Shown: positions 6,476 through 52,104, numbered from the stretch's first letter. The stretch: DNA of 64,000 nucleotides from Oculina patagonica (GCF_052425735.1 NC_135765.1:33480001-33544000); one strand, 5' to 3'. Notes: a model not told the origin generated them from the sequence alone. Numbers and translations: made by a program.

Positions 6476-9400
6476 ATGGAATCTCGTCAGCCAAAAGTTA
6501 ATGTCTCCTTTTCCATTGAAAATATTTTACGAGACGATTTTCCTTATCGACAGAAAGCAAACGAAACTGTCAGTCTACCAACAAGTGAAACAAATTTTGA
6601 ACGATGGCCAAATACAGCAGTTTACCAGTATTATGCAGCTCATTTCAGTCCCGTTGTTGTCAGGAGTCTCCCCAACATGCACAGAGTTGAAGGAAGATTC
6701 AATGGATGTAACGGAGGAAGAGAACAGATTTTATGTCAAGAGCATAACACGACAGCAGGTTATTCAAGATGCCAAGATGAATCTGCGCTCCAACATAAAA
6801 AGGGTAAGAATTATGTTTTTCCAAACTTGATGCTTGGCGAAATGACATCCCGGAAAAATTTATTGTTAAAATATGGCTTATTCCGAACATTAAATTGACT
6901 ATATCTTTTAAATTCATAAAATAAAACACGATTAAAAAATTTAAATTATTACATATCAAACAGGCGATAACATTACTTTGGTATGCTAATAGGGTATAAC
7001 GTGTTTATTTTGTAACGCTCAAATACAAACTGTAAACCGTGATTGAGTTTTAAGCTGTGTGTTGGATAAATTGAATTTCTCTGATGGGAAAAAGGAGACT
7101 GATCTTGTGAAAAATATTCATTGTCATACATACCCTTCAAGAATACAGACAATATATAGAAACATTAATTCGCTATGACGCACTAACATTGTCGTAGAAA
7201 CAAATTTCACTTTTCAAGTTAAGGGAGGTGAAAAACCCCAACGTACTGAAGTCAGTAGCTTAATTTATTCGACTTGGAAGCCAATTTTTGTTCCCTTACT
7301 GTAAAATTCAAACAGAAAAAAAAATAGATGAAAATAAGAGGTACTAAATTTATTTCATTGAAAACTACAGTTGTAAGCATTGTTGTAAGCATTAATAAAA
7401 AAAATAATAATAAAAAAAATAAAAAATAATAAAAAGAAAAAAAGAAAACTACAAGCATATCATGACTTGCTCAGGGTCTGCAGCTCAACACCCGGGCGAA
7501 CTGTAAAGCGTAACTCTCGAGGAATGCCCGTCGGCATTGAAGAATACCCTAAAAGCTCAGAATCTCTTTCAACTTTAAACTGCCAACCCAGAAATTGCAT
7601 GGAACAACTTCTACACTCAGTTTTGCAGAATTACTCTTTTAAATTAAAGTAACCGCGATAGAAACAGCTGTGAGCTGTATCCCTAAGTTATACTAAAAGT
7701 AGTATATCCCCAGCATACAAAATAGGAAATTATCTTTCAAAACTTAACTCTTAATGCTGAGTCATTTAAGTTTGCGTGTTGTAGACAACCGCAAAGTTCT
7801 TTTGATTTCATTTCGTTTCCGCGGTACCCATGAAGTCAATTGCTTACAGCCTTATATTACACTATAAATTGTAATGAAAAGTGGTTACGAAACATGACTA
7901 TGATCCTGTTAAATTTCTTCTCATGAGATATGTTTTTAACCATCCCTTGTTGTATTTACCTTAAAAAAAGAGGTTCGGGTAATTCATTTGTTGGTATGGA
8001 AAACAAAAACTGTACCCAAAGGGCTGTTCCATGTACACAACGAAGTTAATTCTCGTTGCAATATATATAAGGATTCGTGTTCTCTTTGCTATTTTTATTT
8101 GGTTTAACATAAACTTAAGGTTAAAATAAAAACTGGGTCGAAGGTGTAAGTGCCACACCCCGACCACAGCTGTTTCTAGACATAAAATCTCTTTTGTTCT
8201 TTATTTTTTCAGCTGAGTATAGGATATGATATCGGTTTTCCAAGCATATTTTGGTTTCGTGCTTCAGTGCTTTAGCTAACAAAAGGGTGTGACCGATTTG
8301 AGAGCCCTGGCGACATAGCTGTCCGCCTTACAATATTTTCAAAAATGTCGTGACAGTTAACAGTAAACCTTTGAAATTTGTACGTTCTTTAATATTGACC
8401 TTTCAGCTGGTCACATTTAGTCTCAACTCTGAACGAACTCGGGCATGGGTAAACATGCATGCAATAGTTACACAAAGATTCAAGGTGCAAGAAATCGTAT
8501 CAGGAAAATTGTATGATTAAGTTGCAATGGTAACTTTAAACTTTACACTTAAATTAATATGAAGTAATAAATTGCAGCTTTAATTAATTAATTGAGCTGG
8601 TCAACTGCTTGGACGTGCTTCCTAACCTCAGTGAAAAAAATATCTAAGTATAAGTTTTTTCAATTGTTTCCATCCGCTGCAGTTGTATTTCAGGAAAGAC
8701 TTGAGTGTTTGTTTTGCTTTATATAGTGGCTTTTGAGAACTATTTTATCAGTTTAACCTTGTGACTGTGTTAAAAAGTATATTGCTTGAAGCGGCGCGCT
8801 GTAAAAGCAACTGTTTTTAGGAGGATAACAGACCTGCCAACTCCCACGGTTCTGCAGTGAGTCTCCGATTTTTATTTTTTTTCTCACGGTCTCACGACAA
8901 GGCTACCAAATCGCGATTTTTGAAAAATCATTCTGAAATGAAATATTACCTTGTTGAATATGAAAATGGAACATTTATGGGTTATGTTAATGCCTTAAAG
9001 TAATGACTTATCAAAACACTGCACTACTACATTTTGTACCGTACTGCGTGTTTTTACTACTGTTTGCCGTTTCTTAGTTCCAAGGCTTCTGCTTAAAAAT
9101 TACCTGCAACGGTTGTTAACTGTTAATGAACGAAGGGAGATTCCATCCCATGCTGAATTTCCCAGTAATCTTTGCAGTTTATTAATCTTGATCGGGAAAA
9201 AAATGAATCCCACTTCTTTTTAAAAAATCTTCCGTTGGGTCTCTAGAGTTTTCGTTATTGGGGTTTGGCAGGTTTGAGGATAGGATATCAGGCTGCCATT
9301 TGACTTATTAACTTTACGCTTTATATGTAACAATAGGGTATTCAAATTAAAAATATTAGAACGTTGGTAAATATAAAACGAATTGATCGGATATTCTCTT

Positions 9401-10218
9401 ATATACTTTCTAGTCTTTTAAATTCAATTTGTATTCAGACGTTTAAATATAGAAGGAAAAATTTAAGTATATACAATAAATTAACATCTTTTAAAAACTG
9501 CAACTGTTTTTACAGATATATTTAATTCCGGGTATGCATTGTTATTTGCAAACAATAACTGAAACCTTTTTGTTGAATACAGCCATGTTTTATTTTAAGA
9601 CCGGTATTCTATATCTTGGTGTTGCAAAACCGTTTTTGCGTGCCCTGTCTCCAATTGTTTATGCGTAAACGTAGGTGAATATTTTATTAGATAATTTGGA
9701 TATTTTATTCACTGCTTGATAAGTAATATGGATTGAACGGTTACCGCAACATGCAATGTAAACACTTATTTATATTGAACCAGCGTGCAATGCACATCAC
9801 GACCCAAAACTCCTCAATACGTCTCTTTTTAATCAAAGCTTGCAAACTACATCTTAATCTAAACAACTGTTATTTCTCAGGCCCCAAAATAAACGGCAAA
9901 GAAGAAGAATCATTCAACTCAAAAGCGTGTAGCAGTGACGATGGCACGCGTAAACGAAAGAAAAGAAATCGCAGCCATTTCACCAAGCATCAACTCGAGT
10001 ATTTGGAGAAGCTGTTTTCCCGCCAAAAGTACCTAACGCGCGACGAACGCACACTTTTAGCGAGAAGCCTGGAAATGACTGAACTACAGATCCGAAACTG
10101 GTTTCAAAACCGGAGATACCTGAAACGACATCAAGCCAATAGAAAAACACAAAGCAGGATGAACCGGATTCTTCAACGCGTGTACGCGTGTAAAGCAAAG
10201 TGGCAAGTTCGATGTTAG
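6476..10218 (+). CDS. NK-like (NKL) homeobox gene A, join(6476..6803,9881..10218), 221 aa
   Basis: eh1/TN motif FSIENILRDDF; donor G|GTAAG at 6804 and acceptor TTTCTCAG|GC at 9880 join in frame; HD RKKRNRSHFTKHQLEYLEKLFSRQKYLTRDERTLLARSLEMTELQIRNWFQNRRYLKRH. Confidence 0.9.
8701..8750 (+). promoter_or_regulatory. Conserved intronic element (NK site + forkhead-like), gene A copy
   Basis: TTGAGTGTTTGTTTTGCTTTATATAGTGGCTTTTGAGAAC; paralogous copies lie in the B, C, D and psi1 introns. Confidence 0.7.
8829..9276. mobile_element. Non-autonomous DNA transposon in gene A intron
   Basis: TIRs CAGACCTGCCAAC / GTTTGGCAGGTTTG; AGGATA on both flanks. Confidence 0.6.
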
Positions 10219-10959: not shown

Positions 10960-11197
10960 GGCTCACAAACGGATGGCTAAAGGTCTCTTTAATATATTTT
11001 ATTTGAAGATCGGTCATTTCTTAACCGATTGCGTGCGTTCGTCGCGTATTGTATTCTTTTGTGGGCGGGAAACTAACGTCTTCAGATATCAGACGATATT
11101 GCTGTTGAGGCTGGATAAAACGGCATTACTTTGGCTCTTAATTAGTTTGGTAGCGTATTCTCTGAATTAAAGAGTGTCATATCATTTTTAGAATCAT
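10960..11197 (-). pseudogene. psi1: decayed homeobox exon of an inverted NK-like paralog
   Basis: Exact 17-bp GCGTGCGTTCGTCGCGT (11031-11047) shared with the C/D homeobox; collinear matches TCGGTCATTTC, GGCGGGAAA, CAGATAT, GTTGAGGCTGG; acceptor CAG|ATGAT at 11198/11197 as in the paralogs; many indels. Confidence 0.8.
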
Positions 11198-12728: not shown

Positions 12729-14158
12729 AACGTCTATTAAAGCCGACATGTACAGAGCAATGCTTTATGATTAGTACTATTAATAGTATTAATAGACCGC
12801 TTGACGACAAAACACGCCCTGCTATAAAACATAGTCTTTTTTCGCCGTTATTTATAACCTACAGTTTATATCAACATTTTAAATGACTCTTGCAATTTTG
12901 AAACATCGTTAAGCAGATAGTTGGTGACTATAAAATTAAGAAAACATCAACTGAGCTGGTACTGTTTTAAAGTTCCACCAAACTCTCAGAAATTAAATTG
13001 AAAAGCATATTTGGCAATTTATCAGGAGAATTGAAACTTTAAGGTTTGGGTGAACCCACAATTGAGCTATTTTTGAAGCTAACTACATACGTCTATTGTT
13101 CAAAGTCACGGTTGCGAGTTGATATTGCGAAGCGGGCATAAGGTGTCGCCAACGCTAACTAGTTTGATTATACAAAATGGACCACACCCAACCACAAAAC
13201 AACTCAACTGAAGCACGGAACAAAAGCACTTTGCAAGCCAACTGATATCATATACAAAGCTAAAATAACATTAAGGCAATTAGCATATTTCTTTCGATGT
13301 TTTTTTTCCGCTATCTCGACCTCTTTAAAGCGTTTTCTAAACCCACGGAGCAATTGACGTCAACGATCGTAATTTGAACACAAGAGTGTATTTTTAAAGT
13401 AAAAGAATTCAATTATAAAGCTGTGTTCTGTTGGTACAAAACAGGTTTGATGTTTTGGTTTTCTTCCTCTTTTAAAAACTGTTTTCTTCTTAATCCTGAC
13501 TCTTCCCTGGGAAAATAGGGCCATTGTTGATCAACATTTCTGTAGAAACACTTACTTTGGTTGAAACGGTTAAGAGACAACAGTAACTGCTTCCAACCAT
13601 TTCATTAAATTGAACAAAATGATCAAACATTAATTAACCCATATAGTACATGCCCTTAGTAGAAAGTCCGCAGTTGTATATAATACTAATCTCTTGATAT
13701 ATATTCATCATCACTCAAATAAGCTCTGTGTACGAATTTGATTAAAAATTACCCAGTCTTGGAGTCTTCTTTACAAATTATTGTGGCGGGTCCTTGTTTG
13801 GTCCACAACTCATTATATTTACGCAATCGCACCCTTAACTTCTGAGCTTCATTTCCTTTACAGACATTACTAACCCAGGGGTGACTTGTCAGCGAGCAAT
13901 ATCTAATTAAACGACTTCTTCCATAAGTTTTCTATAAAATTCTTTAAGGCTTGACTTGCGAGCATAAAGCCGGTAAAAGGGTTAGAGAAAAACAACAAGG
14001 CTGATATAGATTCTCTCCACTAAAAATGGTGAATTTGGTTTTGAGCTTAGTCAGGGTGAACACTTGCGTTATTATTTTTTTTTTTTTTGCAGCCAAGGAT
14101 ACGGTCGAGTCTTCTATCCAAGTCACGGTCGTGAGTCGATATTGTAAGGTGAGCATAA

Positions 14159-14342
14159 AGGTGGATTACCACTGACGCGTAATTTTTTTACGTGCGTTAA
14201 CGTGCGTGAAAAAATTTACGAACAATGTATGAGCGACGTGCGTAAACGTTTTCGCACGTCGTTCATAAATTGTCACTAAATTTTTTCACGCGTTACAGGC
14301 GCACGTAAAAAATAATTATTACGCGTCAGTGGAAATCCACGT
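14159..14342. mobile_element. Palindromic Harbinger/Tourist-like MITE inserted in repeat unit 2
   Basis: TIR AGGTGGATTACCACTGACGCGTAA; TAA TSD; absent from the other three units, which show the empty site. Confidence 0.85.
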
Positions 14343-15420
14343 TAATTTGTCGCTGCGTAAGTTTGATCAGATAATACAAAATGGGCCACACCCAGCTACA
14401 AAACAACTAAAGCACGGAACAAAAGCACTTTGTAAGCCAACTAATATCATATACAAAGCTAAAATAACACTAGGACAATAAGGATATTTCCTGCGATATT
14501 TTTTCCGCGGTCTCGACCTCTTTAAACCTTTTTTCGTAGCCCACACAGCAATTGACGTCAACGATCCAGTAATTTGAACCACACAAGGGCTAGTTTAACA
14601 AAAACAAAAGTGTTTCAAAGTAAAAAGTTACAGTTATAAAGCTGTGTTCTGTTGGAACAAAACAGGTTTGATGTTTTGTTTTTCTTCCTCTGTTGAAAAC
14701 TGTTTTACACTTACTTAATTTGTTGATCATTATCTCAGCAGCCAACGAGCCCTAACTTTGGTTGAAACGGTTAAAAGGACGACAGTAACTGCTTTCAACC
14801 ATTTTATTAAATTGAAAGAGAATTGAATCAGATAATCAAACATCGAAAAATCGATTTATAGAACATACCCTAGGTAGACAGTCCGCAGTTTTATATAATA
14901 CCAATCTCTTGATTTATATTTATCAGACTCAAATAAGCTCCGCGTACAAATGTACTTGAAAATTTCTTTTTGAAGTCTCCTTTACTCACTGTGCAAGTGA
15001 ATCGCTGCAATTTTTTGTGGCCAGTCTTAGTTTGGTCTACAACTCATTGTATTTACGCAATCGCACTCTTAGCTCCTAAGCTTCATTTCCTTTACAGACA
15101 GCTGATCGAGGAGTGATTTGTCAAGGAGTTATATCTAATTAAACGAATTCCTTCATAAGTTTTATAGAAAAACCTTAAAAATTGACCTGTAAGCAGACAC
15201 CTGGTAGAAAGCATAGGAAACACACATCAACAAGGCTGATATTGTCTCGAATGCACCATCATGTTCTCGCATCTAACATCAAAAGAAATGTATGACACTT
15301 GTCACTTGTGTATAGCCGGCCAGGGTGAACAGTTAAGCTATTTTTGTAGCTAAGGATACAGGTCTTTTGTTCAAAGTCACGGTTGTGAGATGATATTGTA
15401 AGGAGGGCATAAGGTGTCGC

Positions 15421-15645
15421 TATAAGCTCCAATCTTTTGGGTGGTCAACCCTTGTTGAATTACATGATTTTTTTATATTTTTAATCATGTTAATTATATT
15501 ATCTATAGTAGCTAGCATTTTTATATTGTATATATTTTAATTAATTTAGATTTTAGTTTTTAATTTCGTGAAATAACTGTAAACTAGCCGTAAAGCTAAG
15601 ATTATTTCACGCTAATAAAGTATCTATCTATCATCTATCTATAGA
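15421..15645 (+). mobile_element. Short LINE 3'-end fragment inserted in repeat unit 3
   Basis: Interrupts the unit; ends in AATAAAG followed by a (TATC)n tail. Confidence 0.55.
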
Positions 15646-16807
15646 CCACACCTAGCTACGACTGAAGCGCAGAACAAAAGCACTCCGTAAGGCGAGTGAT
15701 ATCATAATACAATGCAAAAATAACACTTAGACAATTAGCACATTTCCTGCGTCGTTTTTTTCCCGTGATCTCGACCTTTCAAAACCCACCCAGTGACTGA
15801 AGCTCATAGCCTGCAAAAAAATAAACTGGGTTATAACCGAGAATAATATGTTCCCAGTTATAATGGATGATGCATTAAAATTTCAGCGAGTATAAAAGTT
15901 ACTGTTATAAAGCTGTGTTCTGTTGGTACAAAACAGGTCGATGCATTATTTTTATTTATTATTTTTCTATTGAAAACTGTTTTTCAATGATTTTCCTGAT
16001 CAACTTTTCAGGAACCAGCGGGCCCTGAATCCAGTTGAAACAGGGACGGTATAACTCGCTTCAAACTATTTCAACAAAATGAAACATACTTAAACCAAAT
16101 AAACCAAAGTTTGTTTTAAAAGCTTGGACTATATCAGTCCCTTTAATTATGACATGACAAGGAGTTGTAAATCAGTGATGCACATTTGTTGATTTGCATC
16201 ATGATAAGCTTCAGTTGGTGTTCGAGTTGAAAAACAAAACTCATCTTGGAATCTTCTTTACTTACAAAGCTACAAAGTATTTTAGCCATGCAGTCTCAAT
16301 GTATTTAATATGCAATCTCACACTTAGCGACCTTCTTAGCTTCATTTCCATTACAGACAGTTAATTGCGGAGCTGTTAAGCTATTTTTGTAGCTAACTAT
16401 ACGAGTCTATTGTTCAAAATCACCGTAATGAGTTGATATTGTGAGGAGGGCATGAGGTCTCGCCAACGCTAAGTTGGATTAAACAGCCGGATAACACACC
16501 ACACCCAACCGCAAAAAAACCACAGAACAAAAGCACTCTGTAATACAAATCAAAAATATTTGCATATTCCCTGCGAGTTTTTCCGCAAAGTCGATCTCTT
16601 TAAAACTTTTCTTAAACCCACTCAGCAACTGACGTACTAACCTGCAAAACAATGATCCAATCACTGTATTTATTTTCATTTATTTATTGTAACCTCACGA
16701 ACTAAATTAAAAATGGTAAGAATTCAACGAGAGCAATTACGTATCTATTTTGCGTCTTTTGTTGAGCACTCTTTCCCGTCGATTTTGAATTGCTGAACAA
16801 GTAATAA

Positions 16808-17728: not shown

Positions 17729-17898
17729 ATTGCTGGGTTGCAGCTGACGTCAGGGCGGCCATGCCGGTGGACAAGAACAAAGCATTTCCCTCCGCTGGGA
17801 ACTAAACTCTTTTCTGATCATGCAGATTCTGCGAGAAGATTTTTTATTGTTTTGACCACCAACATGGCCGCCTTGTCATGTGGGTGCAATCCAGCAAT
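17729..17898. mobile_element. MITE
   Basis: TIRs ATTGCTGGGTTGCA / TGCAATCCAGCAAT; internal GGCGGCCATG / CATGGCCGCC. Confidence 0.7.
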
Positions 17899-17907
17899 TG
17901 GCCATGT

Positions 17908-18291
17908 TCAAAACGAGCAGGGGACTGGGTACGAATATTCAATATCGATTGCACTGAAAAACTGGGCCCATCATCTGAAAGAGCATCCAAAAATTAGTAA
18001 CGCAACCAAATTTGAGAGTTATTGGTTTAAACGCAAAGGCATGGAACTCTTTTAAAAATCGTTAAAATAAGAGAGCTTAGTATGGCTGGATGGACAGCTG
18101 TCCCTCCAATCCATACTAAGCTCTCTTATTTTAGCAATTTCTAAAAGTGAACCATACCTATGCGTTTAAACCAATAACTCTCAAATTTGGTTGAGTTACT
18201 AATTTTTGGATGCTCTTTCAGATGACGGGCCCAGTTTTTCAGTGCAATCGATATTGAATATTCGTACCCAGTCCCTGCTTGCTCGTTTTGA
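17908..18291. mobile_element. Foldback element: near-perfect palindrome of about 380 bp
   Basis: Arms of about 190 bp are reverse complements; centre GGACAGCTGTCC at about 18097, with no spacer. Confidence 0.85.
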
Positions 18292-19739
18292 GTATGGGAG
18301 CTGAAATTGGGGGTTGAAAGGAAATCTAGGGTGTCTCGGGAGAGGTGAAATCGGGATTGCACTGCATTTTGGAGAAATTGTTGGTTTATCAAACCATGTA
18401 GCTCCTGTTGCAAGTTGGCGAGTGTTCATCCTTTTATCGCCACTGTCCCTGACAATAAAGTGATAAAGTAAATGTATAATAGTGGCTCGCAGTTTGTTAG
18501 CTCTGTGTATGTGTCTAGATAGAACATGCATATGGTCAAATTTAGCAGAAAAAAGAATGAAGAGAATTATTTACACTATTCGCATGAATCATTTTTCGTT
18601 GAAGGATAGTTAAGGGGGCAGTGAGTCAGTCACCCAGAGCAGCCAAACCCGATAGCTAGAAAAAATTATTCTCGGAAATCTACAAAATAAAAGTAAAAAG
18701 AAAAACATACAAGGCAAAGCATACTTTTAACAAAATTTATGTTCTCTTCATATTTCAGTCAATAATCATTTCTTAAACTTTGGGCGATTCCTGGTTTTAA
18801 TACATGTTATACTTCATCACCGACCAGCACAACCCTTTCCAAAAGATTTCCTATCCGTCTGTGGGCTTCATCAACGTTTCTTTGTGCTTTATATTATTTG
18901 TGGAGTCGTAGCCACTTGGAAAGATAGGGATTGCCATGCTAATTAAATTACAGAGGAAACTTAAACTGAGAGTAGGTCAGTAAACCCTCTCTAGCAACTG
19001 AACATAACAAACCTCGACTGACAAGAACCTCCAAGTTATGGTTTTAAATAAATACACAAAAAACACGATCGAAAAGCTGGCAAGGGAAATCGTCGAATTG
19101 TTCAGATGTTGAAAATTAGACAAGCTTGGAACGTATGGCTTGACAAAAGTTTTGACTGCTATAATTTGAAAGGCCGCGGAAATTTGGGAAATATAGTTAT
19201 ATGCGTCTGAATTTTCAGATATACAAATTATAAAGGCCTATAATGGCTATGATACTCATATACTCTTTTCTTGGTAACTTTATGATTTTATTGATGAATA
19301 TAGCAGCCTTATGTTCGTTAAGCAACTGAATATAAGCACAGCATGTCGTAACCAAACCCAGTTTAGACTCCGTATCTAGCCTCTATCTACGCAATCATGG
19401 TACTCTTAGCGACTTCCTGAGCTTCCTGAGCCTCGTTTCCTATACAGACAACTTATTGAGGAGTGACTTGTAGACTTGTCTACGAGCAATATTTGAATGA
19501 CTTCTTTGATACAAAAGTTACATTGTCTACAAGGAAATGACTCCTTGTAAAATTGACAAGCATAATAATAATTTAGGAGTGGCTGCTTTTAGCTACGGAA
19601 TAAAACTTTGTCCGGCAACATGTGGTTCCGGCTCTCACCAAACTCACTTAAACACACTTCCACTAAAAGTACCTGAGCCCAAAAATGGGAAAAGCAGTCC
19701 CAAACTATTGAGAGCTATTAAAGAACAAATAGCACTTTG

Positions 19740-20100
19740 TGAAAGTGCAAATAAGTAGTTTTCATTTGAATGGTCAGAAATAAGGGTATCATCCACAGAC
19801 TTAAAAGTAAGAACTTATTTGTACAGCAAAATAAACAGTACCACATGAAAGTACTGCTCAAAGCGATGGCCGCACTAGGGTTTTATCCATAGACTTTAAA
19901 GTTAAAATTTTATTCGTACCGAAAATAAACATTGTCATATGAAGGTACTGACAGGCTAATGGTCCCCATTAGATTTCTATTCACAAGCTAAAAAGTTTAT
20001 TTATTTACTTCCACCGTATTCAGCATAAAATAAACAGTGCCACGTAAAAGTATTGTTCGGTAGCATTTGCATCACCCACACTAAGGTCATCACAACTAAA
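19740..20100. repeat. Dispersed tandem repeat family (unit about 100 bp); also at 37180-37650 and 53115-53180
   Basis: Recurring variants of AAACAGTACCACATGAAAGTACTGCTC..TTTCATTTGAATGGTCA..CTAGGGTTT..ATCCACAGA. Confidence 0.75.
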
Positions 20101-36230: not shown

Positions 36231-38796
36231 GTAAATTGTCTGCATGTCGAGAACCACACGCGCGGCCCACGCGCGTGGAGAACCTTTGTTTGTCATACAT
36301 TTTCTCGAAAATTTATAGAATTGTGGAATTTGTAATGATAATAGAAAAAATATATTTAGTTTATATAATAAGGTTTAAAATTGTTTTGTGTTTAAATGTT
36401 GCCTACTTAATAAGTTTATAACTTAAAAAGACTCTCACAATAAAAATATAAACGCTTTGTGAAATTTTCGGTCAATTTTTTTTTCTAAACTTGGCGGTTT
36501 CCCTACTTACGATTGTGAAGGTGAAAGAGATATTTAAGATATTAAGATATTTTTGAAATCACACTCTTCCCATATAGAATAGAAAGGGTGTGAACTGAGA
36601 TATGTTGACAAAAAAGGGCAACAATACTCTTTCTTTTTTAAAAAACAATCTGCCTTGTTTCAAATTCATGTCTAGTAGATTTTACGACAACACTTCGGTA
36701 TAAAAACTATGTAAAAGTTATTGTCTCACGATTCTATCGTGAGACAAACGAATAAACGTTCAATTCATTCCTATGCAAAAGTATAGCTTTATTTCTAGGA
36801 AACTAACCCTTCAGAAAATTTCTGAAATAAATTAAGATGCCCCGCAAACCGACGCGGAAAAAATCCAAGCAATTTAGTCCAACATCATAAAGTTCAACTT
36901 GAGTTCTGTGAGTTCAGAATAGATACAAGTTCCTTGAACAGTATTAGACAAATTATGCCATAAATACTGAAAGATAAGGCATAAGATGTTTTTCAGAAAT
37001 GTAGCAAGCCTAACATTTGAATTGACTAATGGATTGTTTTTTATGACTTTTCCCAGGGCCTAATACCTCAGGGGTTACCTCTTAACCAGTGAACTCTGCC
37101 ATTCCCAAAAGTATCTACTACGCCATATCGAGTTCAAAATAAAAGGATAAAACATCCAAAATTCAACTAACAATTAGAAAATAACAGCACCACATAAAAG
37201 TACTGCTCATAAACTTTTATTTTAATGGTCACACACTAGTTTTTTTTCCACAGAACTACTTTGAACGATTTAATTGACAGTAGTACATAAAAGTACTTCT
37301 TAATATGTAGCTTTCATTCGAATGGTCAAGTACTAAAGCTTCATCAACAGACTTCAAAGTGAGAAACACTGACCTTATACAGTATAATAAACAGCACCAC
37401 ATGAAAGTAATGCTCATTAGCTTTTCATTTATTTGAATGTTAACAAACAAGTGTACCATCCATAGGCTAATAGTTGGAACCACTTTGTACAGCATAATAA
37501 ACAGCATCACAAAAATACTACTCATTAGCTTTTATTATAATGGCCATATACTAGGGTTTTATCCACAGAACTAACCAGTGAACGACACAAACAGTACCAT
37601 ATAAAAATGTATTGCTCAATAGTGATGATTACACTGAATAGGGCTTCATCAACAGACTTAGAAAGCTACAATCTTGCATTGGACAAAACCTGTTGAGACA
37701 AATCTAAATTATCCTCGAAAAAACAATATCACACTAAATTCCCAGCAAAAACTGTTATTGTCCCTCTCCCCTCATTCAATGTTTCTTTAAGTCTTCAGCA
37801 AATTCAGTGTAAAGCACATGAAAAACCAAATCAACTTTGACCAGCGAGAAGAGGGATGGAAATTTGCTGTTTAAACATGGGCAAGGGTGTTTTTATATTA
37901 ATGAGTTACGTACAATTGCCTCAACAGTTTTGTCCAAGATTGTAGACTCGACCTCGTCTATTTTTGAACTGTGCTTCCTGACGACAAATATTTTAAATTT
38001 CAAGTACGTTTCTAAAGTACGAAATGGCTCTTGAACTAATAGTAACCCTTGGAAACGCTTAAGGTCTAATTTAGTGCGTCGCATTCAAGTCTGATCATGA
38101 GTAATTGTATATAATTCGACTAAAATTCGCCACCAAAAATACAATACATCCTGCATAGAAACGAATTATTTCTTGCCAACTAATGCAAAGTCTGTTCAGT
38201 AGCCTGCAAGCGATTTGAGCAAATTTTCTGAGAGTCGATATCCATACGCCACGACTTAAATGCCATGTGAAAATTACCTTAACGAGGAGAGAGAGTATCT
38301 TATCTATTTAAAAAAAAATCGATTCAGATATTAGCCTTTTCACGTGCACTTCTGACGCTAAAAATAAAATGTGCCATTCAAAACACACGATAAACCCTAT
38401 CTAAACAATCTTATGAACTTCTAAACATTCGCGAAGGAAAAAGTTCATGGTACTTTAATTAAAGTTTGTAAGCAGGCTCTTAGTTAATTGATCTGTATCA
38501 TGAAAAACTTGATCATTTCAGGCAGTGAGAACTGAGGAAATGAGTATTCTCGTTCCTCGCGAGTGCATTATAGATGCTCCGAATAATCTTTTGACATACT
38601 TAAGTCACTTGACAGAAATATACCCGATATGATGTTAGGGATACCTGTTTTAAGGTTCTAAGAATTAGAGGAACTTGAAGATTCATCGATATTAATGCTA
38701 GTGGTTTAATACTCCGGTTTCTGCACGATGAGGGTACTAGGAATGCATGCCATGAGTAGAATGTAGAACTACCTTGGGTTTTTATTATAGGAAATT

Positions 38797-38841: not shown

Positions 38842-38852
38842 TTTTTTTTTTT
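38797..38852. repeat. Long poly(T) tract
   Basis: About 50 nt of almost pure T. Confidence 0.9.
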
Positions 38853-39415: not shown

Positions 39416-41814
39416 CATATGACCGCGAAGTAAAATGATCAAATTCTTCGTTGCGCTCATTTGTGAACATCAACATGCGTCTTTACATATTCTGCTATGC
39501 CGTGAGACAGTTCTGAAGGTTTCTGACATATAATCCACACACTGACTAATAGATAAATCAATCGCGAAACTGTTGATAAAAACTGGCGGGTATATAATTA
39601 TCGAATGCTGTCACTTTTTAATGGGGCTTTATCACGGATTTAAACAGATTTTTGAACAGCCAAAATTTACATTTGTGTCGTGGGAAACCTAAAAATTACG
39701 GTCCATTTTTATCAAAAATTGCTATGTTAGAGCTTAACAAGCGTCATTCGCTGTAGATACACGATGGCTAGGATGGAAATGAATTGCAACTTGAAAAATT
39801 AAGGCTTAACTTTTCAAGTTGTTTCCGAGCGTCTTGGTAAAATCAATTTATAGCTGAAGTTTGATTTCTCTCCGCAAATTCAGGTTACATCTTCCTTCAG
39901 ATGTTCAAAGATAATGTTTTTCATGGGTTAGGTTGCCTACCACCAATTTCAAAACAGTTAAGTCCAAAAATATGTGAAATCCCCGTGACGTAACTTCTTT
40001 AATCCGCATCAGTCCTCGTTAAACTCCCTGATGATATCATGCACCCCCCACCCTCACACATTATATGAAAAAATCGGTGGGTGGAAGTTGTTTGTATTGG
40101 CTTTCGCCCGGTTTTTAAACAAAATGAAGTGATATATACGTATAAAATTCCCTTCTACTTCTCGTGACGCAGTTGTTAATTTAGCCTGTATCTCTTTTCA
40201 CCAGCCAAGGGAAAATGAATATTATAAATAAGGTAAACTTTTTCAACAAAACGAACCCGTGATAAAAGGTATGCAGTAAATTCAGCTATATCGAACACTT
40301 CGGAACCACAATTTAGTGTCCGTGATAGAGAAAGTCCGTAATAGTGAGTGCTATTTTTAGTAATGCTTCTCAACCGGTAGAAAAAAGAACCTGTGATAAA
40401 CGGTCAGTGTGTGCCATTCCGGCTTTATCGAACATTTCGCGGGGAGCTACATTTTAGTGTCCGTGATAGAGAAATTCTGTAATAGTGAATGGTTATTTTT
40501 AGTATTTTAAAATCTCCACCGGGACTTCAATTCCTCTCCGCAACAACAGAGTGTCCGTAACAGCGAAGTGTCCGTAAGGCGGGAATTGATTGTAACAAAT
40601 TATTTATACCAGCTTGCCGGGTTTATGCCTGAGAGAACCGCAATTAGCGGGCGAATCGGTTGGCTAGTTATATGGTGTGGCCAAGAGGATAAACTCTGGT
40701 CTACAAATTGAAGAAATCCGGCCAGCTTAGTCCCAGATAACAAAACCAGCGCCCTAAAGCCTGGTTCTCATATGATCGCCCGATCGCTTCTATTGCATCG
40801 ATCGTGTCCAAATACTAAGACGATCGTAGGCGATAGAAGCGATTGAAGCGATCGGGGGTTCTCATATGATGGTCCCGATCGCCTGGTATGAGCGAAACCT
40901 GCAAAAAGCAATCATTTTAGCCCTAGATTCAACACAATGGCAGCTCATATTCTAACTGAAAGAGCAAATACTCCTGGTCTCCTATCTTCTCAGAAATTGT
41001 AGTTTTAAGAACGAGCGAAAGAGAGAGGAAAAAAAAAGCTAGAAGGATAGAACACGGGCGATTCTCACACGATTGCCCCGAAATGCCGCAATACGAAAAA
41101 TCGATTTTATCTTGTTACAGCATAAAAAGTGGACAGAGGTGCGATGGAACCGTCAGCGATTTTCTTCGCTTCAAATCATAAAACACGAATCAAGACACGC
41201 ACTACAAAGAAGCGGAGAGCATAAATCAGCTTGCCTTATAATGCATTTCGTCTATAAGGCATTTTTTTCTGTTTGTAAACACACAAAGTTTTTGGAAGTC
41301 TCCGTTTTGGATAGTATTTTTTTTTTTATTAAACTAACTCACTTAAAATATTTTAATACAACTCTCATTATTCACAATTATATATAGTTACCATGTTCTA
41401 TAAGTTTTAAAAATATCTTTTTGAGTAATACTGTACAATCATCTTTCCTGACAATCAAATAAAGCAACGCCAAGATTATATATCTTGTTGAAGATTATAA
41501 ATAGCATAAGACATAAATAATGTTAAAATAGAAAACTGAAATCGTGCGTTGAATGCATTTTCATTTTTAGGTCAGTTTTTTTTTCTTTTTTTTTTTGGTT
41601 TGTTTCAAATTCAGGGTAGGTCTTCCTGTTTCATCTTTGTTTGCTTGTAGTCGACATGTAAATGTCCGATTACAATGTTATATTTTGTTCGCCCTTAAGA
41701 GCGAATCGTTTTACAAGAACCGCGCATCTAACGTGATCCTTTGCCCTTTCCTGTTATTTTATAAAACAGCTTATTTGCAGTTTTTTAGTTCAATCCTTGC
41801 TGACTCAGTCAGTT

Positions 41815-44571
41815 TTAGACTTCGCTTTTCTCACAGGCTACAGAATCCGGTTTATCCGGGTTCGTGTTCTTGTTAGCGCAATGCTTTTTCTGGTATCTCC
41901 TGTTTTGAAACCAGTTTCTGATCTGGAGTTCAGTCATTTCCAGGCCCCTCGCCAATAGCGTGCGTTCGTCGCGTGTAAGATATTGTTGGCGGGAAAATAT
42001 CTTGTCCAGATATTGGAGTTGACGCTGGGTGAAATGGCTGCGATTCCTGCGTTTCCGTTTCAAAGTATTCACTTTCAAGCACTTCTCTGACTTAGTTTCC
42101 ACTTCGGCTTTCTCGTCCTTTGTTTCATCTAGGAATAAAACATAAGGTATAACGCTTAGAGATTTCTGAAACTCTAACACCAAACCGTATTTAATCAATG
42201 ACTGTTTAAGTTCAAAATGTGTTTATTCTCCGTGATACCTCATTTTAACTGAAGCAATAACAAAGCCATTTTTAATAGTGGATCTTTCGATATAGCTATT
42301 GCGGTTAAATCGAATAATAAGATATGGCTTATTTTGATGAATGTTCCAAAACTCATATTAGTAATAATTTAACTGATTAAGGAGATCTTTACTGACTCTT
42401 CGTTGATCTTGCCGATCGGTGTAAATTTGAGTGCGTAAATTAGAAACTCACGTAAAAACACTCAAGGGAAAAGGAAAAATATTGTATAGAAAATGTCTCT
42501 ATAGCAATCAGTTGCTAAGACAGGCGTTTTTGATATTTTATTGTCTGAAAGCGCGAACAATTAAATTTAGAACGGGAAACTGACTATTAGCCTAGAGAGT
42601 CGCAAGACTCAACTCCTTCTCGAGTATTCTTTAAATTTTAATTGCCAGATTTTAATACAGCCAAATATAGATAGAATTCATGGTGTATTTGCAGCAAGTT
42701 ATTGAGTCGGGGTCAAAATACGATCGGTTGTTATGGGAATATTATACGTACACTAGGTAAAAAAAAGGAGTTAAAATACGGATATAAATGGGTTCTTAAA
42801 AGCCAGTATATAGCCAAACAAACACTTGAATCTCTATAAACATTTGCAAGCGGAAATCAGATACATGAGATTATTTTCGCCGTTAACGTCAATACACACC
42901 CACTCACGCTTAGAAGTGATTTTCCGCGCCCGGCTCACTTACAAAAACAGCATAAATTTATTACTTAGACTTGTTTATCGCGCTTGACGAAAGCATAGCA
43001 GGTCTTAGTAGGGCTAAAGAAAGCACAGCAACTTTAATTCAATGTAGTTAGGTACATTAATGCGAGCTGTGGTATTTTTATGATATAACACGCAAGCGAA
43101 GGTGTATATTTGGTATTGCTCATGGCAACCGTCACGCCCTATTGGGAAATCTACTGAAGCACAACACCACAATACATGTATTATCTGCCAAGCCGGCGTC
43201 GTTACTAAAGATATCTTTGTTGGCAAGGGAATAAGTTTAAAGATTAGAAACAATCTAGGGAAAAAGCAGTGATTTTAACGTTTCGTTTTGAAGTGAAAGT
43301 AAAAGAGAATCTGAAAGCTTCTGAGATTCAATGACGTTTAAGGAAGTTGCACTGGAAAACAGTGCAGCACTGAGGAACCAGTATTTTATGAGTTTTATGA
43401 CCAGTTGTTGAGTGGGCATGATGACATTTCGAGACAATACATGATAAATAAAACTGAGAAATTTGTTATAATGACCTCATCTCCTTAACTTGGGTTAGAG
43501 AGAAGTCGTTACTCCTACGGAGATTTGTTTTCTAACGCTTTGTTCAGTGAAGTCAACAAAAATTTAAAATTGCGTAATTTTTCATGACAAAAATACGATA
43601 GTATAAGAATACTGCAGGTAGGCGTTGTTATAGTCTGGCCAACGATTCTGCTTTCATTACGAAATTCCAACACCATCGCCGTGCAAAGATATAACTGAGT
43701 TTCGGTTTTTCCGCAATCTTTAATTTAATGACGTGAAAGACACCTGACTTTGCTCCTGTTATCAGCAATTATTTCTGTTGTTTTTGATACCTAGAAATAA
43801 CTTAACACGGAATATGGACTATGCCCGGAAAAAGTTCACCTTTAAATTTGGCATTTGTACCCTGTTCGATTTTAGAAAAAAATGTGTACGTGCTTCATAA
43901 ATATAACAATCGGTTTCTTGCCGAGACAAGCTCCAACCGAGAAGGAAATTGGTCAATATATACGTAAATTCTGGACTCTAATCCGTGAAATCCATGCTAT
44001 TTGTCACGCTTTGGGTTGTAAAACAAAGCTTAATCATATGAGCCAAGTTAAGGTTCAACTATGTTTTTAAATAAACACATTATGACTATATACCTAAGTT
44101 ATCCTGTAATCGTTTGATACCCTAATCGGTTAAAACCCAACTCCACGGATTTAAGGTCTTTTTTCTAAGAACTCTAAAAGTCTTAGCTTAATGTTTGATT
44201 AAAATGTGAGTCAATGAATATTTTAGGTTTATTTTAAAATACTTACCGTCGCCCCGAGGTGGTTCAGAGTCTTCGCAGCTCAAGTAGTCTTCTTTAAAGT
44301 TTTTTGGCTGGTCTGAAAATTCTAGCTGTTTTTCTGCATTTACTCTGTGAAATCTTGCACCAACTCTTTGCACAATCGGCACAAAATGCATAAAAACTGG
44401 ACAATAGCGAACTGCACAATAGCGATAAACAGGAGTGCTTGGCCATCTTTCAAAACTTGACGGGTTCGACGGAATACTTGGAACATTTCTTGTCCGTCGC
44501 TGGGAAAAATCCTCTCGTAAAATATTTTCTATCGAAAAAGATAGATTAGTTTTCTGGTGGTGAAAATCCAT
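41815..44571 (-). CDS. NK-like homeobox gene D, complement(join(41815..42128,44247..44571)), 212 aa
   Basis: MDFHHQKTNLSFSIENILREDF; donor G|GTAAGT, acceptor TTCCTAG|AT, in frame; HD ...QIRNWFQNRRYQKKH. Confidence 0.92.
42783..42830 (-). promoter_or_regulatory. Conserved intronic NK/forkhead element, gene D copy
   Basis: Minus strand TTCAAGTGTTTGTTTGGCTATATACTGGCTTTTAAGAACCCATTTAT. Confidence 0.7.
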
Positions 44572-45380
44572 TTGATTAAAACTCGACCGCAACTAAGCCC
44601 CGGCCGTGACCTTACAATAGACAACTTCTGCGGAAAGTGAAAGCTGTTTCGCTAACACATGAATTTTAACTAGGAGTCAGCGATATTTAAAGCAACGGAC
44701 CGCTGGACCTGTCGGGACTCGGATGAAGGATGGTGCTATTTTTAGGAACAAAGAGTTGTTGTTTTTCCGGGCTCACACTTACAAATTTTACCACGCTACT
44801 CGGTAAATTACATCAGTTTAATCCATTATTAAAAGTAACTTTTCCGGGACTGATAGCACTCTGTGGGCAAAGAAATGTTCTCCGAGGTCTCAATAATCTC
44901 TCCTCCAATCACTTCAAAATGTTACAGCGTTTCCGCTGTTACGGCGAAACTGAAAACGGGCAAACAGAAATTTTTTGTTGATTGTGCATTTCGATGAAAA
45001 TGCTCGGTTTGCAGCAAAAACGACACAAAATAAAGAAATCAAAATAATTATTTCCAGGACTCAATACTCCTTTTAATCTAAACAGAGAGAAGTTTGTCGC
45101 CCCCCAAAATCCCGGACTTATGTAAAATGACAGCAATGTATTTGACTATGTGGGTTGTGTTATAAACTCATTTCAGCTCATTCGACACGGTTCAGTTTAC
45201 ATGACGCCTCCCTGGGACAAGCCCCCATATTTTTCGTCATCGTTTCCATTACTAAATTGATATACAATAATTCCTTTGAAAGAGTTATCAAACTAGTTAA
45301 CAGGATAAACATGCACAGGACAATAACAGTGATAGATTACGGTCATTTCAGCAATTTTCTTTGAAGGACTCCATCTGTTG

Positions 45381-45403
45381 GACGTACTTCCGGTTGACGT
45401 CAT
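45381..45403 (-). promoter_or_regulatory. Upstream CRE+ETS composite element of gene D
   Basis: Minus strand TGACGTCAACCGGAAGTACGT vs B TGACGTCACCGGAAGTACGT. Confidence 0.65.
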
Positions 45404-47083
45404 CATTAAAAACATCACGCTTTGTTTGGGTTCAACCCACGCGCGTAGCGTGACATGAACTTCAATCGATTAAAATCACATTTCCGATGTACTTATAATA
45501 ACAACATATTTGCGTTATGATTCTCAGATGAGATCACGAGAAAATCATGAGCTTTTGAGTGTGGGAGACCATGATTCTGCAGAATTCCGTTAACTTTAAA
45601 GGTACAATTTTTAACATCATTATGCCGTAATTAAACTCAGTCTAGCCGCTCCGCCGTGTGAATTTTAATACTCACTGTTGGCTATTGTTTGATTTTTATT
45701 CAGGAGCCGGATAGCTTTAAAACATGCAGGAAGGAAGGAAATATGATGTGTATTGAAACAGCTGTTTATAGCACAACCAAAGAATGGTTAATAGTATGAG
45801 GTCTATGAGATGTCTCGCCAAAACTGACTTAACTGAATCGTCTCGGAATTTTCAGCCGGGGTTCCGCGATTATCATTTTCAAAACTTTGCTTTGTGTCTT
45901 ATTCAATTATCGGGTCAGCCAGCGAAACTCGGCTCGGAAACTTAATTTATATGACGAATTTTCTTTAATTTACAATAGACTTTCTTTGTCGCTTTTATTG
46001 CCCAATATTTTGTAAATATGACATAATTCAACCTTTGGGTTGCAAAGTTATATGAATAAAGTATCTATCTATATATCTATCTCCTTCGGCTCCGCTTTTT
46101 TGAGTCGAAGTGTACATCGGCGCTCCTTATATTTTGAACCAAAAAAATGTTCGTTAATGGTTAAATTTTGGGTACTAAAAATGACTCAGTAGGGCTCGTT
46201 CTCTAGATTGGCGGTCAATCATTACCCTCATAATTATGTTAAAACAAAATAAATGCTTATATTGTTTTCAGTGCAGTTTTATTTTAAAACATGTCTGAAA
46301 CCACCGCCTTAAGCTTGACAAATTTCATCATTTCTAATAAAAAATCATTTTTGGCCGATTTCAGTTTAGAATACTGGCAACTAAATACAGTTTTCCTGTA
46401 CGTCAAGAAAATTAACTGCTTGGCTTTTGTGGCCAAACCCGGCACAAATAAAGCTAAATAACGTAAGAGGATGGGAGCAGTAAGCATTAGGAGAACAATC
46501 AAATAAACTTTAGTTCCTTTAAGGACTTCCTGTCGGTTTTTTAGGCGTAAACAAGCGTAATTCAGATCGCATCCTGACTACAAACAACAAAACAAAGCAG
46601 AACAGGCCAGGGAGCTGTCGCTCCACCTTGACGCAAAAATAAACATTTACTGCATGAATTGCATAAAAACAGAGGCCCTTTTGCACTTCAGACACTTACG
46701 GTTTTCGTTGATGCCTTTTGCGCCTGTCCTTCGATGATCGAAAACGCTCCTCATCGTTTTCATAAAAAACGCACTCTCGTAAATTCACGGCGGAAAACGG
46801 AGCCTCTCTTATCAGTGTGGACGGCCAAAACGGAGGATTTCGTTAACGCTGCTTTTATTTTCTACGATATTCAATTGAAAAAGCGACACTGCCTTGATTT
46901 GGCATCTCGGATGACGTACCGCAACAAAAAGAAAAAGAAACCTAGAACCATAGGACAAGCAAAGTTAAAATAACTTTTGAATATAAACCTACGAGTGTTA
47001 GCTACTGTATCAGCTTTTTCATCAGGAATATTAATATGTGTAGAGCATTTGGAGCTAACGGAACAAATAAATAAACTTGACAT

Positions 47084-49701: not shown

Positions 49702-52104
49702 TCATCGATCGTCTGAAGCATGCGCAGTACAGCCAGTACTGCTGCTGACCAACACTTTAACAGGAACCTGTCTGGCCCGGTTTATTCCGCGGTGCCTCAA
49801 CTGGTATCTCCTATTTTGAAACCAGTTTCTGATCTGCAGCTCTGTCATGTCCAAGGCGTTCGCCAGCAGCGCGCGCTCGTCACGTGTCAAGTATTGTTGG
49901 CGGGAAAATACGTCTTCCAAATACTTGAGCTGCATCTGTGTGAAGTGACTTCTGTTTCGCTTCTTTTTCACCTTGCTTTTCTCTGCCCCAATTGTTTCAT
50001 CGACCTGTTTAGTTCCCTCGGTCTTTTTACTTGAACTGGCAGCACTGTTATCTATAAATGAGAACGGAAAGAAATAATTTTGCTGCTAAAATTTAAAATG
50101 TACGCAGAAAAGAAAAGAAAAGAAAAGAAAAACGACTTTTGTAGGGTAACAAAATTCCTGGTGTTCCAGTAGTTTTCATTGTGGCCCTGAATCCCCAATC
50201 AAATTGGAATTTATACGTGTTGGTTTTTGCAGAGGGAGGAAAACCGGAGAACCCGGAGAAAAAACTTCGGAGCAAGCGACGAGAACCAACAACAAACTCA
50301 ACCCACATATGACGCCGAGACCAGGAATCGAACCCAGGCCACATTGGTGGGAAGCAAGCGCTCTCACCACTTCGCTATCCCTGGCGCGAAAATATAGCTT
50401 ATTTAATTCGCAGACGTAAAACGTTAAAGTTATCTTTAGGTTCGTATCGCTGGGACGATAAACTTAGCTTAGAATATGCTATTTAAAAATGTACCTATTA
50501 TGAGCTAGGTTAAGCGCCCTCAGCACTATCATTGGAAAATACCAAATTTATTTACCCCATAATTATCCCAATGATTTGTGTCAAAAAAAGAGAAATATAA
50601 GAAAAGAAAAATGCGTACGCGGATTATCACTTGATTGTCAAAAGATTTGTGTAAAGGAATGGAACAAATTTCTACCCTTTGCAATATTTTTTTTTCGTTT
50701 CTAAGCTGGCTGTCACTAATTTGCATGGTGGTTCAAAACTAAAAGGCAATACTTCTTGATGAATTTGTTCGTTCTCATTACCCGACTAATTGAAATTGTA
50801 TAATGTTGTACGGAGAAATTATACCATAAACACTGATGAAACTAGTACCAATAAAGATATAGAACGTAAGATAATTAAGTTTGAGTGGATAATTAAGTGG
50901 ATCTCGCTTTACGACCATACTTTAAATACTAACACCATGTTCATTACGCCCATTTTTTTCTTTTTTTTTCTGGCAAGAACAAAAACTCAGCGAATTTTGT
51001 ATTTGAAGAAAATCCCATTCGACCAGCGCGCTGATGCGACCAACGACCACCTTTTAAAGGGCGAATATCTTAGTTTATGAAATTACCACGTTAACACCGT
51101 GAACGATGAATTGACAGAAAGCAAATAGAAACTGAATTTCGCGCAGTTACAATGACAGTAGTGACATCGTTTATTTTATATTTGTGTATTTGCATTTGCG
51201 CTGCATGTCTGATTTGAGCAAACCCTCTGTTAATATGACTGCCCTGTTAATACAATGCAACCAAGATTTTATGGCACGTTGGATATCATATGGAAGGGGT
51301 TTCGCTGTAAAACGAACGCGGGGCACAGGAAAAAAGTAAAACAACGACAACAAAGGCTGTAAAATAAAACACAAATGAAAATCTTAGCTAACTCTCGATC
51401 CCATGGGTCTCTAAAGTGAACCTAAAAAATTAATATTTCGACTTTTATTCAAAACTGACAAGACATGCATTTAAATGGAAATCAGTGAAGTTATTCACGG
51501 CTAACAAACGTGCGAGTTTAACTACGCATATACTTATCCTTTTTCACCTAAAGATGCAGCGCTTCATACATATTAAAAGAGGCGACAATTTTTAAGCTAA
51601 ATTAACCCTAATTGCGTTCAGAATCCGTGCGAACTAAACTCTTTTCTTTACTAAACATTTTCAGCACCTACAGAGCTAGAAATTTCAAGTGTGATGAGTA
51701 ATTAGAAAAACCACGTTCTTTAACTGAACTGCGCTTAATTTTGAGTTGGCAAGAGAGTGGACGCGACTAAGTGAACTGAATAAAAACTTACTAAAGTAGG
51801 TTTGGAAAGATATATTCAGCATACCTCTCTTTCGTTGCTGTTCTTTGACATGGCCGGAGTTTTGAAAGGCCTCTCTCTCCGGATTTGCGGGAAGAGTTTG
51901 AGCGCTGTAGCTACCTCTGCCAAAAAATTCTGTTTCATTGCAGTGGATCACACGTTGATTTAGTTGGCATCTCAGAGCCACAAATGGAACTCTACTGCTT
52001 TCAGGTGCCATGTATAATACTCTCGGCGCTTTTGTAATGCGCGAAGGATGAGGGAAGTCCGAACGAAGAATATTAGCGACAGAGAACGGCAAATTTTGTG
52101 CCAT
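49702..52104 (-). CDS. NK-like homeobox gene E with TN/eh1, Y54 HD and NK2-SD-like motif, complement(join(49702..50051,51825..52104)), 209 aa
   Basis: MAQNLPFSVANILRSDFP; donor G|GTATG, acceptor TTATAG|AT, in frame; HD KKRNRSHFTQMQLKYLEDVFSRQQYLTRDERALLANALDMTELQIRNWFQNRRYQLRH, followed by RQVPVKVLV. Confidence 0.9.
50184..50385 (-). mobile_element. tRNA-derived SINE with V-SINE-like central domain, in gene E intron
   Basis: tRNA-like head (AGTGGTGAGAGCG..GGGTTCGATTCC) followed by TTCTCCGGGTTCTCCGGTTTTCCTCCC. Confidence 0.8.

Follow-up and report, generated by a model that had tools for sequence, protein, structure and literature searches.

A Conserved Cluster of a Probable Hexacoral-Specific NK-Like Homeobox Family in the Stony Coral Oculina patagonica

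Introduction

Ryan et al. (2006, PMC1779571) listed two homeobox genes of the sea anemone Nematostella, NVHD054 and NVHD081, among the ANTP-class homeodomains that lack a family assignment. In the supplement of a later study, two Nematostella genes labeled "BarH-like 2, NKL/ANTP" (NVE8565 and NVE8567) lie 19.7 kb apart on chromosome 4 (chr4), whereas chr5 carries the NK cluster and a "Tlx-like" gene (NVE10217), and chr2 the NK2 genes (Zimmermann et al., 2023). Furthermore, an anthozoan-specific group of homeobox genes, ANTP-group-c, is expanded in Actinernus (Law et al., 2023, PMC10598428), and four "MSX" genes with tissue-specific expression were reported within the NK clusters of a robust coral, Fimbriaphyllia ancora (PMC11269664). 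Here, we describe a stretch of 64,000 nucleotides (nt) of the stony coral Oculina patagonica (GCF_052425735.1 NC_135765.1:33480001-33544000; hereafter the window), located at approximately 33.48–33.54 Mb of the 34.34 Mb of chromosome CM126642.1. The window contains five homeobox genes, referred to as A, B, C, D, and E, and two decayed copies, referred to as psi1 and psi2. We consider it likely that these constitute a conserved cluster of a hexacoral-specific, NK-like family of the ANTP class, namely the family of NVHD054 and NVHD081, and that this family is a divergent offshoot of the NK2/NK3/NK4 group.

NVHD054 bears the NCBI name "BarH-like 2" and is located on the fourth chromosome record of another Nematostella assembly, which is read here as chr4. 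From the name and the record number, we infer that one of the two chr4 "BarH-like 2" genes is NVHD054; the second is likely NVHD081. ANTP-group-c may or may not be equivalent to the coral family, and the F. ancora "MSX" genes might be members of it. One family member has been automatically named "vab-15-like," vab-15 being the nematode Msx gene. A literature search by the names NVHD054 or NVHD081 returned nothing relevant, no paper describing the coral cluster was found, and the literature searched contained no family assignment or functional study of either gene.

Gene Models and Transcription

Gene models were constructed by exon-level tblastn and nhmmer searches, followed by selection of homologous donors and acceptors. 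This yielded five two-exon models, in each of which the first exon bears eh1 and the second the homeobox. Their positions, counted from the first nucleotide of the window, are as follows.

Gene A, plus strand: exon 1 at 6476–6803, exon 2 at 9881–10218, homeobox at 9958–10137; intron of 3077 nt; 221 amino acids
Gene B, plus strand: exon 1 at 21655–21976, exon 2 at 25018–25322, homeobox at 25083–25262; intron of 3041 nt; 208 amino acids
Gene C, minus strand: exon 1 at 35345–35009, exon 2 at 32856–32555, homeobox at 32782–32603; intron of 2152 nt; 212 amino acids
Gene D, minus strand: exon 1 at 44571–44247, exon 2 at 42128–41815, homeobox at 42054–41875; 5′ untranslated region to at least 44642; intron of 2118 nt; 212 amino acids
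Gene E, minus strand: exon 1 at 52104–51825, exon 2 at 50051–49702, homeobox at 49965–49786; intron of 1773 nt; 209 amino acids

The original prediction, which was made from the sequence alone, described five intact two-exon genes with an eh1/TN exon, a phase-1 intron, and a homeodomain exon, encoding 208–221 amino acids; all five are confirmed at the positions that it gave, and its orientation, with A and B forward and C, D, and E reverse, is correct. The donors are G/GTAAG or G/GTATG (the slash marks the junction), the acceptors are of the polypyrimidine-AG type, and the intron is in phase 1 in five of five genes; in gene A, the donor reads GTAAGA and the acceptor ..TCTCAG. All five proteins contain PF00046 with E values from 1e-16 to 6e-18. 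The protein A model is identical to GenBank ACROYT_G029748. The junction of gene B is that of the N-terminally truncated G029750, and G029751, also N-terminally truncated, is an exact suffix of the gene C model with the same junction. The GenBank version of gene D differs from the model at the C-terminus.

Transcript evidence was obtained from RNA-run contigs of four runs in three studies, placed on window positions 40400–46399. In all four runs, the contigs skip the gene D intron between 42128 and 44247 (CT..AC on the plus strand, GT..AG on the gene strand), and they extend to 44642 in the 5′ untranslated region. Thus, of the splice junctions for which the original prediction had proposed confirmation by RNA, that of gene D, the locus covered by this comparison, is matched exactly. 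The contigs are 95–99% identical to the window, and some of them are therefore from other individuals or close relatives. In addition, two public transcript contigs (L007 and L008) encode the complete spliced protein of the Acropora orthologue of gene E.

Protein Features and Definition of the Family

The proteins consist of an N-terminal eh1/TN motif, a linker, and a homeodomain. The motif, FS(I/V)(E/A)NILR, is located at residues 8–19 and reads FSIENILR in A–D and FSVANILR in E. The linker is poorly conserved and spans the single phase-1 intron. In the homeodomain, W48, F49, N51, and R53 are all present, along with N47, Q50, and Y54. Proteins are considered NK-like when proline is absent from position 26 and a negative residue occupies position 30 (10.1101/2023.03.14.532566); L26 and E30 are present in all five proteins and, together with the N-terminal eh1, are features of the NK-like subclass of the ANTP class. 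Residue 19 is I, L, or V, that is, uncharged as in Barhl, Hmx, and Nk6. The homeodomain of gene B is distinguished by a diagnostic Q52 (NQRY) instead of R/K, which is common to the B orthologues of Oculina, Desmophyllum, and Porites, that is, of robust and complex corals. In gene D, 60 of 60 homeodomain residues are the same in Oculina and Desmophyllum, with nine silent changes; extreme purifying selection acts on the homeodomain. Gene E carries an NK2-SD-like motif after the homeodomain, and its orthologues in Desmophyllum, Acropora, and Montipora have in common with it the N-terminus MAQNLPFS..ANILRSDFPHPSRI and the tail RQVPVKVLVSS. The SD-like motif reads RQVPVKVLV in E and its orthologues, RQVPIEVLV (E for K) in a sixth Oculina member, P0063, and KQVPVKVLV in NVHD054. 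An ancestral protein with the TN-homeodomain-SD build of NK2/NK3/NK4 proteins is therefore suggested, because E, NVHD054, and other E-type proteins retain the motif.

A profile of eleven full-length members was compared with 1.84 billion representative proteins and gave 42 matches below 1e-30. Homeodomains were extracted from all fetched proteins, and 109 of them combine N47 with Y54 and score 93–138 bits against the family profile; outside this set, the next protein scores 75 bits, and NK3 proteins score at most 65 bits. The family is characterized by N47, Q50, and Y54, RSHF at positions 5–8, YL(T/S)RDER, MTELQ(I/V)RNWFQN(R/K)RY, an eh1 N-terminus, and one phase-1 intron before the homeobox. 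All five Oculina genes fit this signature, B with Q52 in place of R/K. The family is monophyletic with support of 100/99 in a full-length maximum-likelihood (ML) tree of 51 rows and 215 columns, and with 99/97 in a homeodomain-only ML tree when an outlier with T47 (P0166) is included. The original prediction that the homeodomain matches no canonical bilaterian family and belongs to a lineage-specific family with eh1/TN and Y54 thus agrees with a discrete set of sequences on a long stem. P0166 (ENA, 140 amino acids) has T47, Y54, and the motifs YLSRDERALLA and RYQLRH, and is the nearest outlier (75 bits) and the sister of the family; it may indicate that the family extends to a further order of cnidarians. 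Several predicted proteins with multiple homeodomains returned by the profile search (P0103, P0104, P0105, P0107, and others) were rejected as members. As expected of a collection made for annotating bacteria and archaea, NCBIfam yielded no match.

Named members come from Scleractinia and Actiniaria only. The stony corals are Oculina, Desmophyllum, Orbicella, Pocillopora, Stylophora, Porites, Montipora, and Acropora, and the sea anemones are Nematostella (XP_032241060.2) and Actinia (XP_031552777.1). The homeodomain of XP_032241060.2 is that of NVHD054, letter for letter, and NVHD081 is the second Nematostella member. The original prediction had suspected that the family was already partly catalogued, and rightly so, because Ryan et al. 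(2006) listed both genes without assigning them. The automatic names of the members clash: BarH-like 2, Hox-D9a-like, Hox-C6a-like, Hox-A9-like, GBX-2-like, zampogna-like, vent1-like, vab-15-like, notochord-like, HMX2/3-like, and TLX. The sixth Oculina member, P0063 (E-like, 207 amino acids), lies on CM126645.1 at 20.33 Mb (L009) among arginase genes. A related type on a Tara coral metagenome scaffold (L010) adjoins arginase exons, and the linkage to arginase is thus conserved.

Relationship to NK3 and Other Named Families

The genes might instead be drifted coral orthologues of a named family, i.e., NK3/Bapx, Tlx, or BarH. NK3 proteins are the nearest full-length matches of the family profile, and an alignment with NK3 at 40% identity spans the homeodomain and the SD motif. 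When NVHD054 is aligned to the NK3 of Actinia by BLASTP, its SD-like motif falls opposite AKKVAVRVLV. NK3/Bapx/Nkx3.2 proteins (for example, amphioxus P0160 and Actinia P0170) have in common with the coral family an N-terminal TN/eh1 motif and Y54 and, with its E-type members, V-x-V-K-V-L-V after the homeodomain. Y54, the TN/eh1 motif, and the lone intron ahead of the homeobox are reminiscent of the NK2/NK3/NK4 group as a whole. The solved homeodomain with the best score is Drosophila Clawless, and the automatic names include "zampogna-like," "TLX," and "BarH-like 2." By contrast, where NK3 has K46, I47, and K55, the coral family has R46, N47, and Q or L55; its residue 19 is hydrophobic, and it is placed outside NK3 in the rooted full-length tree. 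The NK3 helix Q-V/I-K-I-W-F-Q-N-R-R-Y-K-T-K-R is replaced by QIRNWFQNRRYQ(K/R/L), and every NK3 scores at least 28 bits lower than the homeodomains of the family. A canonical NK3 coexists with the family, and is separate from it, in Actinia (P0170) and in Nematostella on chr5, where clear orthologues of NK1, NK3–NK7, Msx, and Lbx are also found, whereas the "BarH-like 2" pair of that species is found on chr4, apart from the NK cluster. As for Tlx, its features T47 and T54-K-W-R-R are replaced by N47 and Y54, and R46 and the non-basic residue 55 likewise differ from it. The BarH/Barhl class has Y49 in place of F49, and all members of the family have F49. Furthermore, the automatic names are mutually inconsistent, with Hox-D9a, Hox-C6a, GBX-2, vent1, vab-15, notochord, and HMX2/3 among them. 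Membership in a named family is therefore unlikely in our judgment, and the sequences more readily suggest a distinct NK-like family that is probably derived from NK2/3/4 stock.

Orthology, Conserved Synteny, and Decayed Copies

In the full-length ML tree, the partners of each Oculina gene are genes from other corals and not its own neighbours. Gene A groups with the Orbicella cluster (P0003) at 98/94 and with the Pocillopora cluster (P0031) at 91/92, and its orthologues are found in Desmophyllum, Orbicella, and Pocillopora. Gene B groups with Pocillopora meandrina (97/95), gene C with Pocillopora and Stylophora (98/95) and with Porites and Montipora (82/85), and gene D with Desmophyllum D (98/96). 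Gene E and the E genes of Desmophyllum, Acropora, and Montipora fall within a group of 89/76, with the nearest forks at 90/89 and 97/83. The flanking genes and decayed copies are as follows.

130..1299, minus strand: trypsin-like serine protease exons, left flank; open reading frames (ORFs) at 130–381 and 1111–1299, PF00089 Trypsin, E 7e-18 and 1e-7
11002–11124, minus strand: psi1, short decayed homeobox fragment, tail-to-tail with gene A; nhmmer E 1.3e-12
27883–28160, plus strand: psi2, decayed homeobox exon, 2.6 kb downstream of B and on the strand of B; nhmmer E 6e-41
58613..59632, minus strand: 339-amino-acid ORF of a multi-pass membrane protein, right flank; without Pfam match

The flanks are as originally predicted, with a protease on the left and a membrane-protein gene on the right. 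In Desmophyllum pertusum (MU826368.1), E, D, and C in forward orientation are followed by B and A in reverse orientation and then by trypsin, which is the Oculina layout flipped, including psi2 and the membrane-protein flank. Alignment of the loci of the two species extends into introns and intergenic DNA, with 69–76% identity. On the trypsin side, window positions 1127–1349 are 86% identical to Desmophyllum L005 938–1157, where the trypsin gene adjoins A; the membrane-protein flank has 75% DNA identity to L001 4453–5317, 5 kb from the E orthologue. In Porites evermanni, D and C in forward orientation are followed by a psi2-like relic and B, both reversed, and in Acropora digitifera, E is followed by D in the same forward orientation, 4.3 kb apart. 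Porites and Acropora are complex corals, whereas Oculina and Desmophyllum are robust corals. Because parts of the layout occur in both groups, the array with psi2 appears to predate the Complexa/Robusta split, the deepest among living stony corals; genes C, D, E, and B, the latter with psi2, would thus be older than this split, and A older than at least the radiation of robust corals. The shared synteny that the original prediction had proposed to seek in corals and anemones is full in Desmophyllum and partial in Porites and Acropora; in Nematostella, NVHD054 has no family neighbour within 10 kb.

The Desmophyllum scaffold contains two near-identical copies of the cluster approximately 500 kb apart (L004/L005 at 589–640 kb and L001/L003 at 1086–1132 kb), in which D exon 1 is 100% and B exon 1 96% identical; a decayed homeobox separates B from C in the second array as well. 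Two explanations come into question for the double array, a tandemly joined haplotig or a segmental duplication of very recent date, and frame breaks in several Desmophyllum copies may be assembly errors. If these copies are haplotigs, a collapsed or duplicated haplotype might also be suspected in Oculina. The pairwise identity of proteins A–E is, however, only 45–65% overall (31–54% in the exon-1 part and 48–77% in the exon-2 part), and the five genes are therefore not assembly duplicates; in addition, their intron lengths differ, each has its own orthologues, the region is present in DNA runs, and the RNA transcripts are specific to gene D in exon 1. An assembly artefact can be practically dismissed.

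The psi2 translation contains stop codons and frameshifts. An orthologous relic occupies the same relative position in Desmophyllum, with a 3-nt insertion in common and different stop codons, and Porites has a weak psi2-like relic with a collinear flank. The psi2 region (27797–28589) is 73.5% identical to Desmophyllum; this divergence equals that of the adjacent non-coding DNA, and psi2 is therefore considered to evolve neutrally. psi1 also contains frameshifts and stops, the end encoding WFQNRR is missing, and its identity to the homeoboxes of B, C, and D is 71–77% over 58–100 nt; a counterpart was not found in Desmophyllum. The notion that psi1 is a whole inverted gene with an amplified intron was rejected, since an exon-1 relic is absent and the repeat unit beside it corresponds to ordinary single-copy A–B intergenic DNA in Desmophyllum. 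Instead of the at least three decayed copies (psi1, psi2, and psi3) originally predicted, only two were found: nhmmer with --max at E ≤ 10, tblastn at E ≤ 1, and a scan for the eh1 motif detected neither a third homeobox relic nor any exon-1 relic in the window, apart from a marginal match at 36208–36309 on the minus strand (E 0.14), which is not counted as a copy. Two reading frames of psi2 may have been taken for two copies.

The original prediction had further interpreted the locus as a birth-and-death cluster with fast turnover. On this view, the array would be young, with copies continually gained and lost in the Oculina lineage. Such an array would account for the two decayed copies, for the lack of a detectable psi1 counterpart in Desmophyllum, and for the 91–92% DNA identity among the homeoboxes of B, C, and D. 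By contrast, other coral families possess a 1:1 orthologue of each gene, to which the gene is closer than to the paralogues of its own cluster; order, orientation, and both flanks are identical in Desmophyllum and in part in Porites and Acropora; psi2 is common to three genera; and exon 1 is only 57–68% identical between paralogues, so that the similarity of the homeoboxes is better explained by gene conversion and purifying selection. We regard a young, rapidly changing array as very improbable. The evolutionary reading is reversed: this is an old, static cluster. The duplications that yielded A, B, C, D, and E would be old, with order, orientation, and flanks fixed since.

Possible Gene Conversion Among B, C, and D

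Between Oculina and Desmophyllum orthologues, exon 1 is 73–81% identical at the nucleotide level in B, C, and D and 69% in A. Over approximately 170–200 bp, the sequences that precede the start codons of B, C, and D can still be aligned with one another, which is the only hint of the shared cis-regulation suggested in the original prediction. In the homeobox, silent differences among B, C, and D amount to 5–10 of 55 same-residue codons within Oculina and 4–9 of 56–58 codons within Desmophyllum, compared with 9–13 of 55–60 codons between Oculina and Desmophyllum orthologues and approximately 22 of 55 codons against Acropora D. Because the paralogues are older than the species and yet have fewer silent differences, the pattern suggests repeated, partial homogenization of B, C, and D by gene conversion, limited to the homeobox.

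Repeats and Other Features of the Window

Additional features were observed in and around the cluster, among them an intergenic repeat.

13062..16652, no strand: approximately 1.2-kb unit, 3–4 repeats between A and B, detected by self-blastn

Self-blastn aligned 13166–14007 with 14370–15242 at 74%, along with further pairs. The unit was amplified in tandem in Oculina, and the homologous sequence occurs once in the A–B interval of Desmophyllum. Tandem Repeats Finder reported no repeats in 10–21.6 kb, having missed the approximately 1.2-kb repeat because its period exceeds 500 nt. Also between A and B, the ORFs at 17738–18055 (plus strand) and 18141–18413 (minus strand) encode near-identical peptides and form an inverted duplicate of approximately 300 nt, with a chance eh1-like match. 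A satellite-like repeat, or one resembling a miniature inverted-repeat transposable element, with approximately 70–110 nt per unit, forms tandem runs at 19713–19950, 37183–37671, and 53107–53191; the same repeat occurs many times in the Desmophyllum and Porites loci and is therefore regarded as an old repeat family common to stony corals. The ORFs at 4017–5008, 29798–30406, and 55716–56252 have similar C-termini and no Pfam match, and are probably pieces of one retrotransposon family in and around the cluster. A minisatellite at 5108–5483, between a retroelement fragment and gene A, encodes a six-residue unit (…SIVMRL…) in all listed frames.

Predicted Function and Significance

An eh1/TN motif generally recruits Groucho/TLE. 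The cluster proteins would accordingly be expected, like other NK-class proteins, to bind DNA sequence-specifically via the homeodomain and to repress transcription by Groucho/TLE recruitment through this motif. B, C, and D would be almost alike in DNA specificity, and the differences among them would lie in the linkers and in the place of expression. More tentatively, the cluster might be a hexacoral "mini NK cluster" fixed by shared regulatory elements, as in Hox and NK clusters, whose members pattern distinct polyp tissues or coral-specific structures, with homeobox conversion preserving common DNA targets for B, C, and D as their linkers and expression diverge; we offer this as a speculative and rather doubtful possibility.

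Several observations weigh against the interpretation of an old cluster of a distinct family derived from NK2/3/4 stock. Genes A, B, C, and D do not have the SD-like motif. In the homeodomain-only ML tree, whose reference sample consists of the proteins returned by the searches, the long stem of the family emerges from a polytomy that also includes NK3, NK2/4, Tlx, Not, and Lbx. By the homeodomain alone, Clawless (a Tlx-family protein) is followed by Nkx3.1 and Barhl1 among solved structures, although the proximity of Clawless and TLX2 to the family is one of score only. No A orthologue was found among the named sequences of complex corals, and the Complexa/Robusta dating depends on the assignment of the genera to these two groups. 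The gene-conversion signal comprises few sites and could be mimicked by codon-level constraint. Finally, transcription is seen directly for D only, in addition to the E orthologue in Acropora.

Homeobox families confined to one lineage are usually portrayed as young, volatile arrays, whereas this hexacoral-restricted family behaves like the ancient Hox and NK clusters. It provides evolutionary developmental biology with a nameable family, which is currently auto-labeled in more than 10 contradictory ways, with a test case for whether cluster conservation outside Bilateria reflects shared regulation, and with candidate regulators of coral-specific anatomy. The find is nevertheless modest; single family members were already catalogued, and the function of all members is a prediction.

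Comparison with Known Systems

The closest described genes are those of Nematostella. NVHD054 (DQ206272; XP_032241060.2, "BarH-like 2") resembles the coral genes in RSHF at positions 5–8, the eh1 N-terminus, and the two exons, and resembles gene E in its KQVPVKVLV motif. NVHD081 (DQ206330) has the same homeodomain signature, but with THF in place of RSHF. The arrangement is different, since corals have a tight five-gene cluster and a sixth, dispersed gene, whereas NVHD054 stands without a family neighbour in the 10 kb around it. ANTP-group-c of Actinernus (Law et al., 2023, PMC10598428), the mammalian ETCHbox genes, and the lepidopteran Shx genes are likewise lineage-restricted homeobox genes with tandem duplication. 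According to their descriptions, those arrays are recent and their copy numbers vary, whereas the coral cluster retains its members, order, and orientation across distant stony corals. The canonical NK cluster (NK1, NK3, NK4, NK5, NK6, NK7, Msx, Lbx, and Tlx) is also a conserved NK-like cluster with mixed orientations. Its members, however, are different ancient families common to bilaterians and it is located on chr5 in Nematostella, whereas the coral members belong to one hexacoral-specific family, of which the Nematostella counterpart is on chr4.

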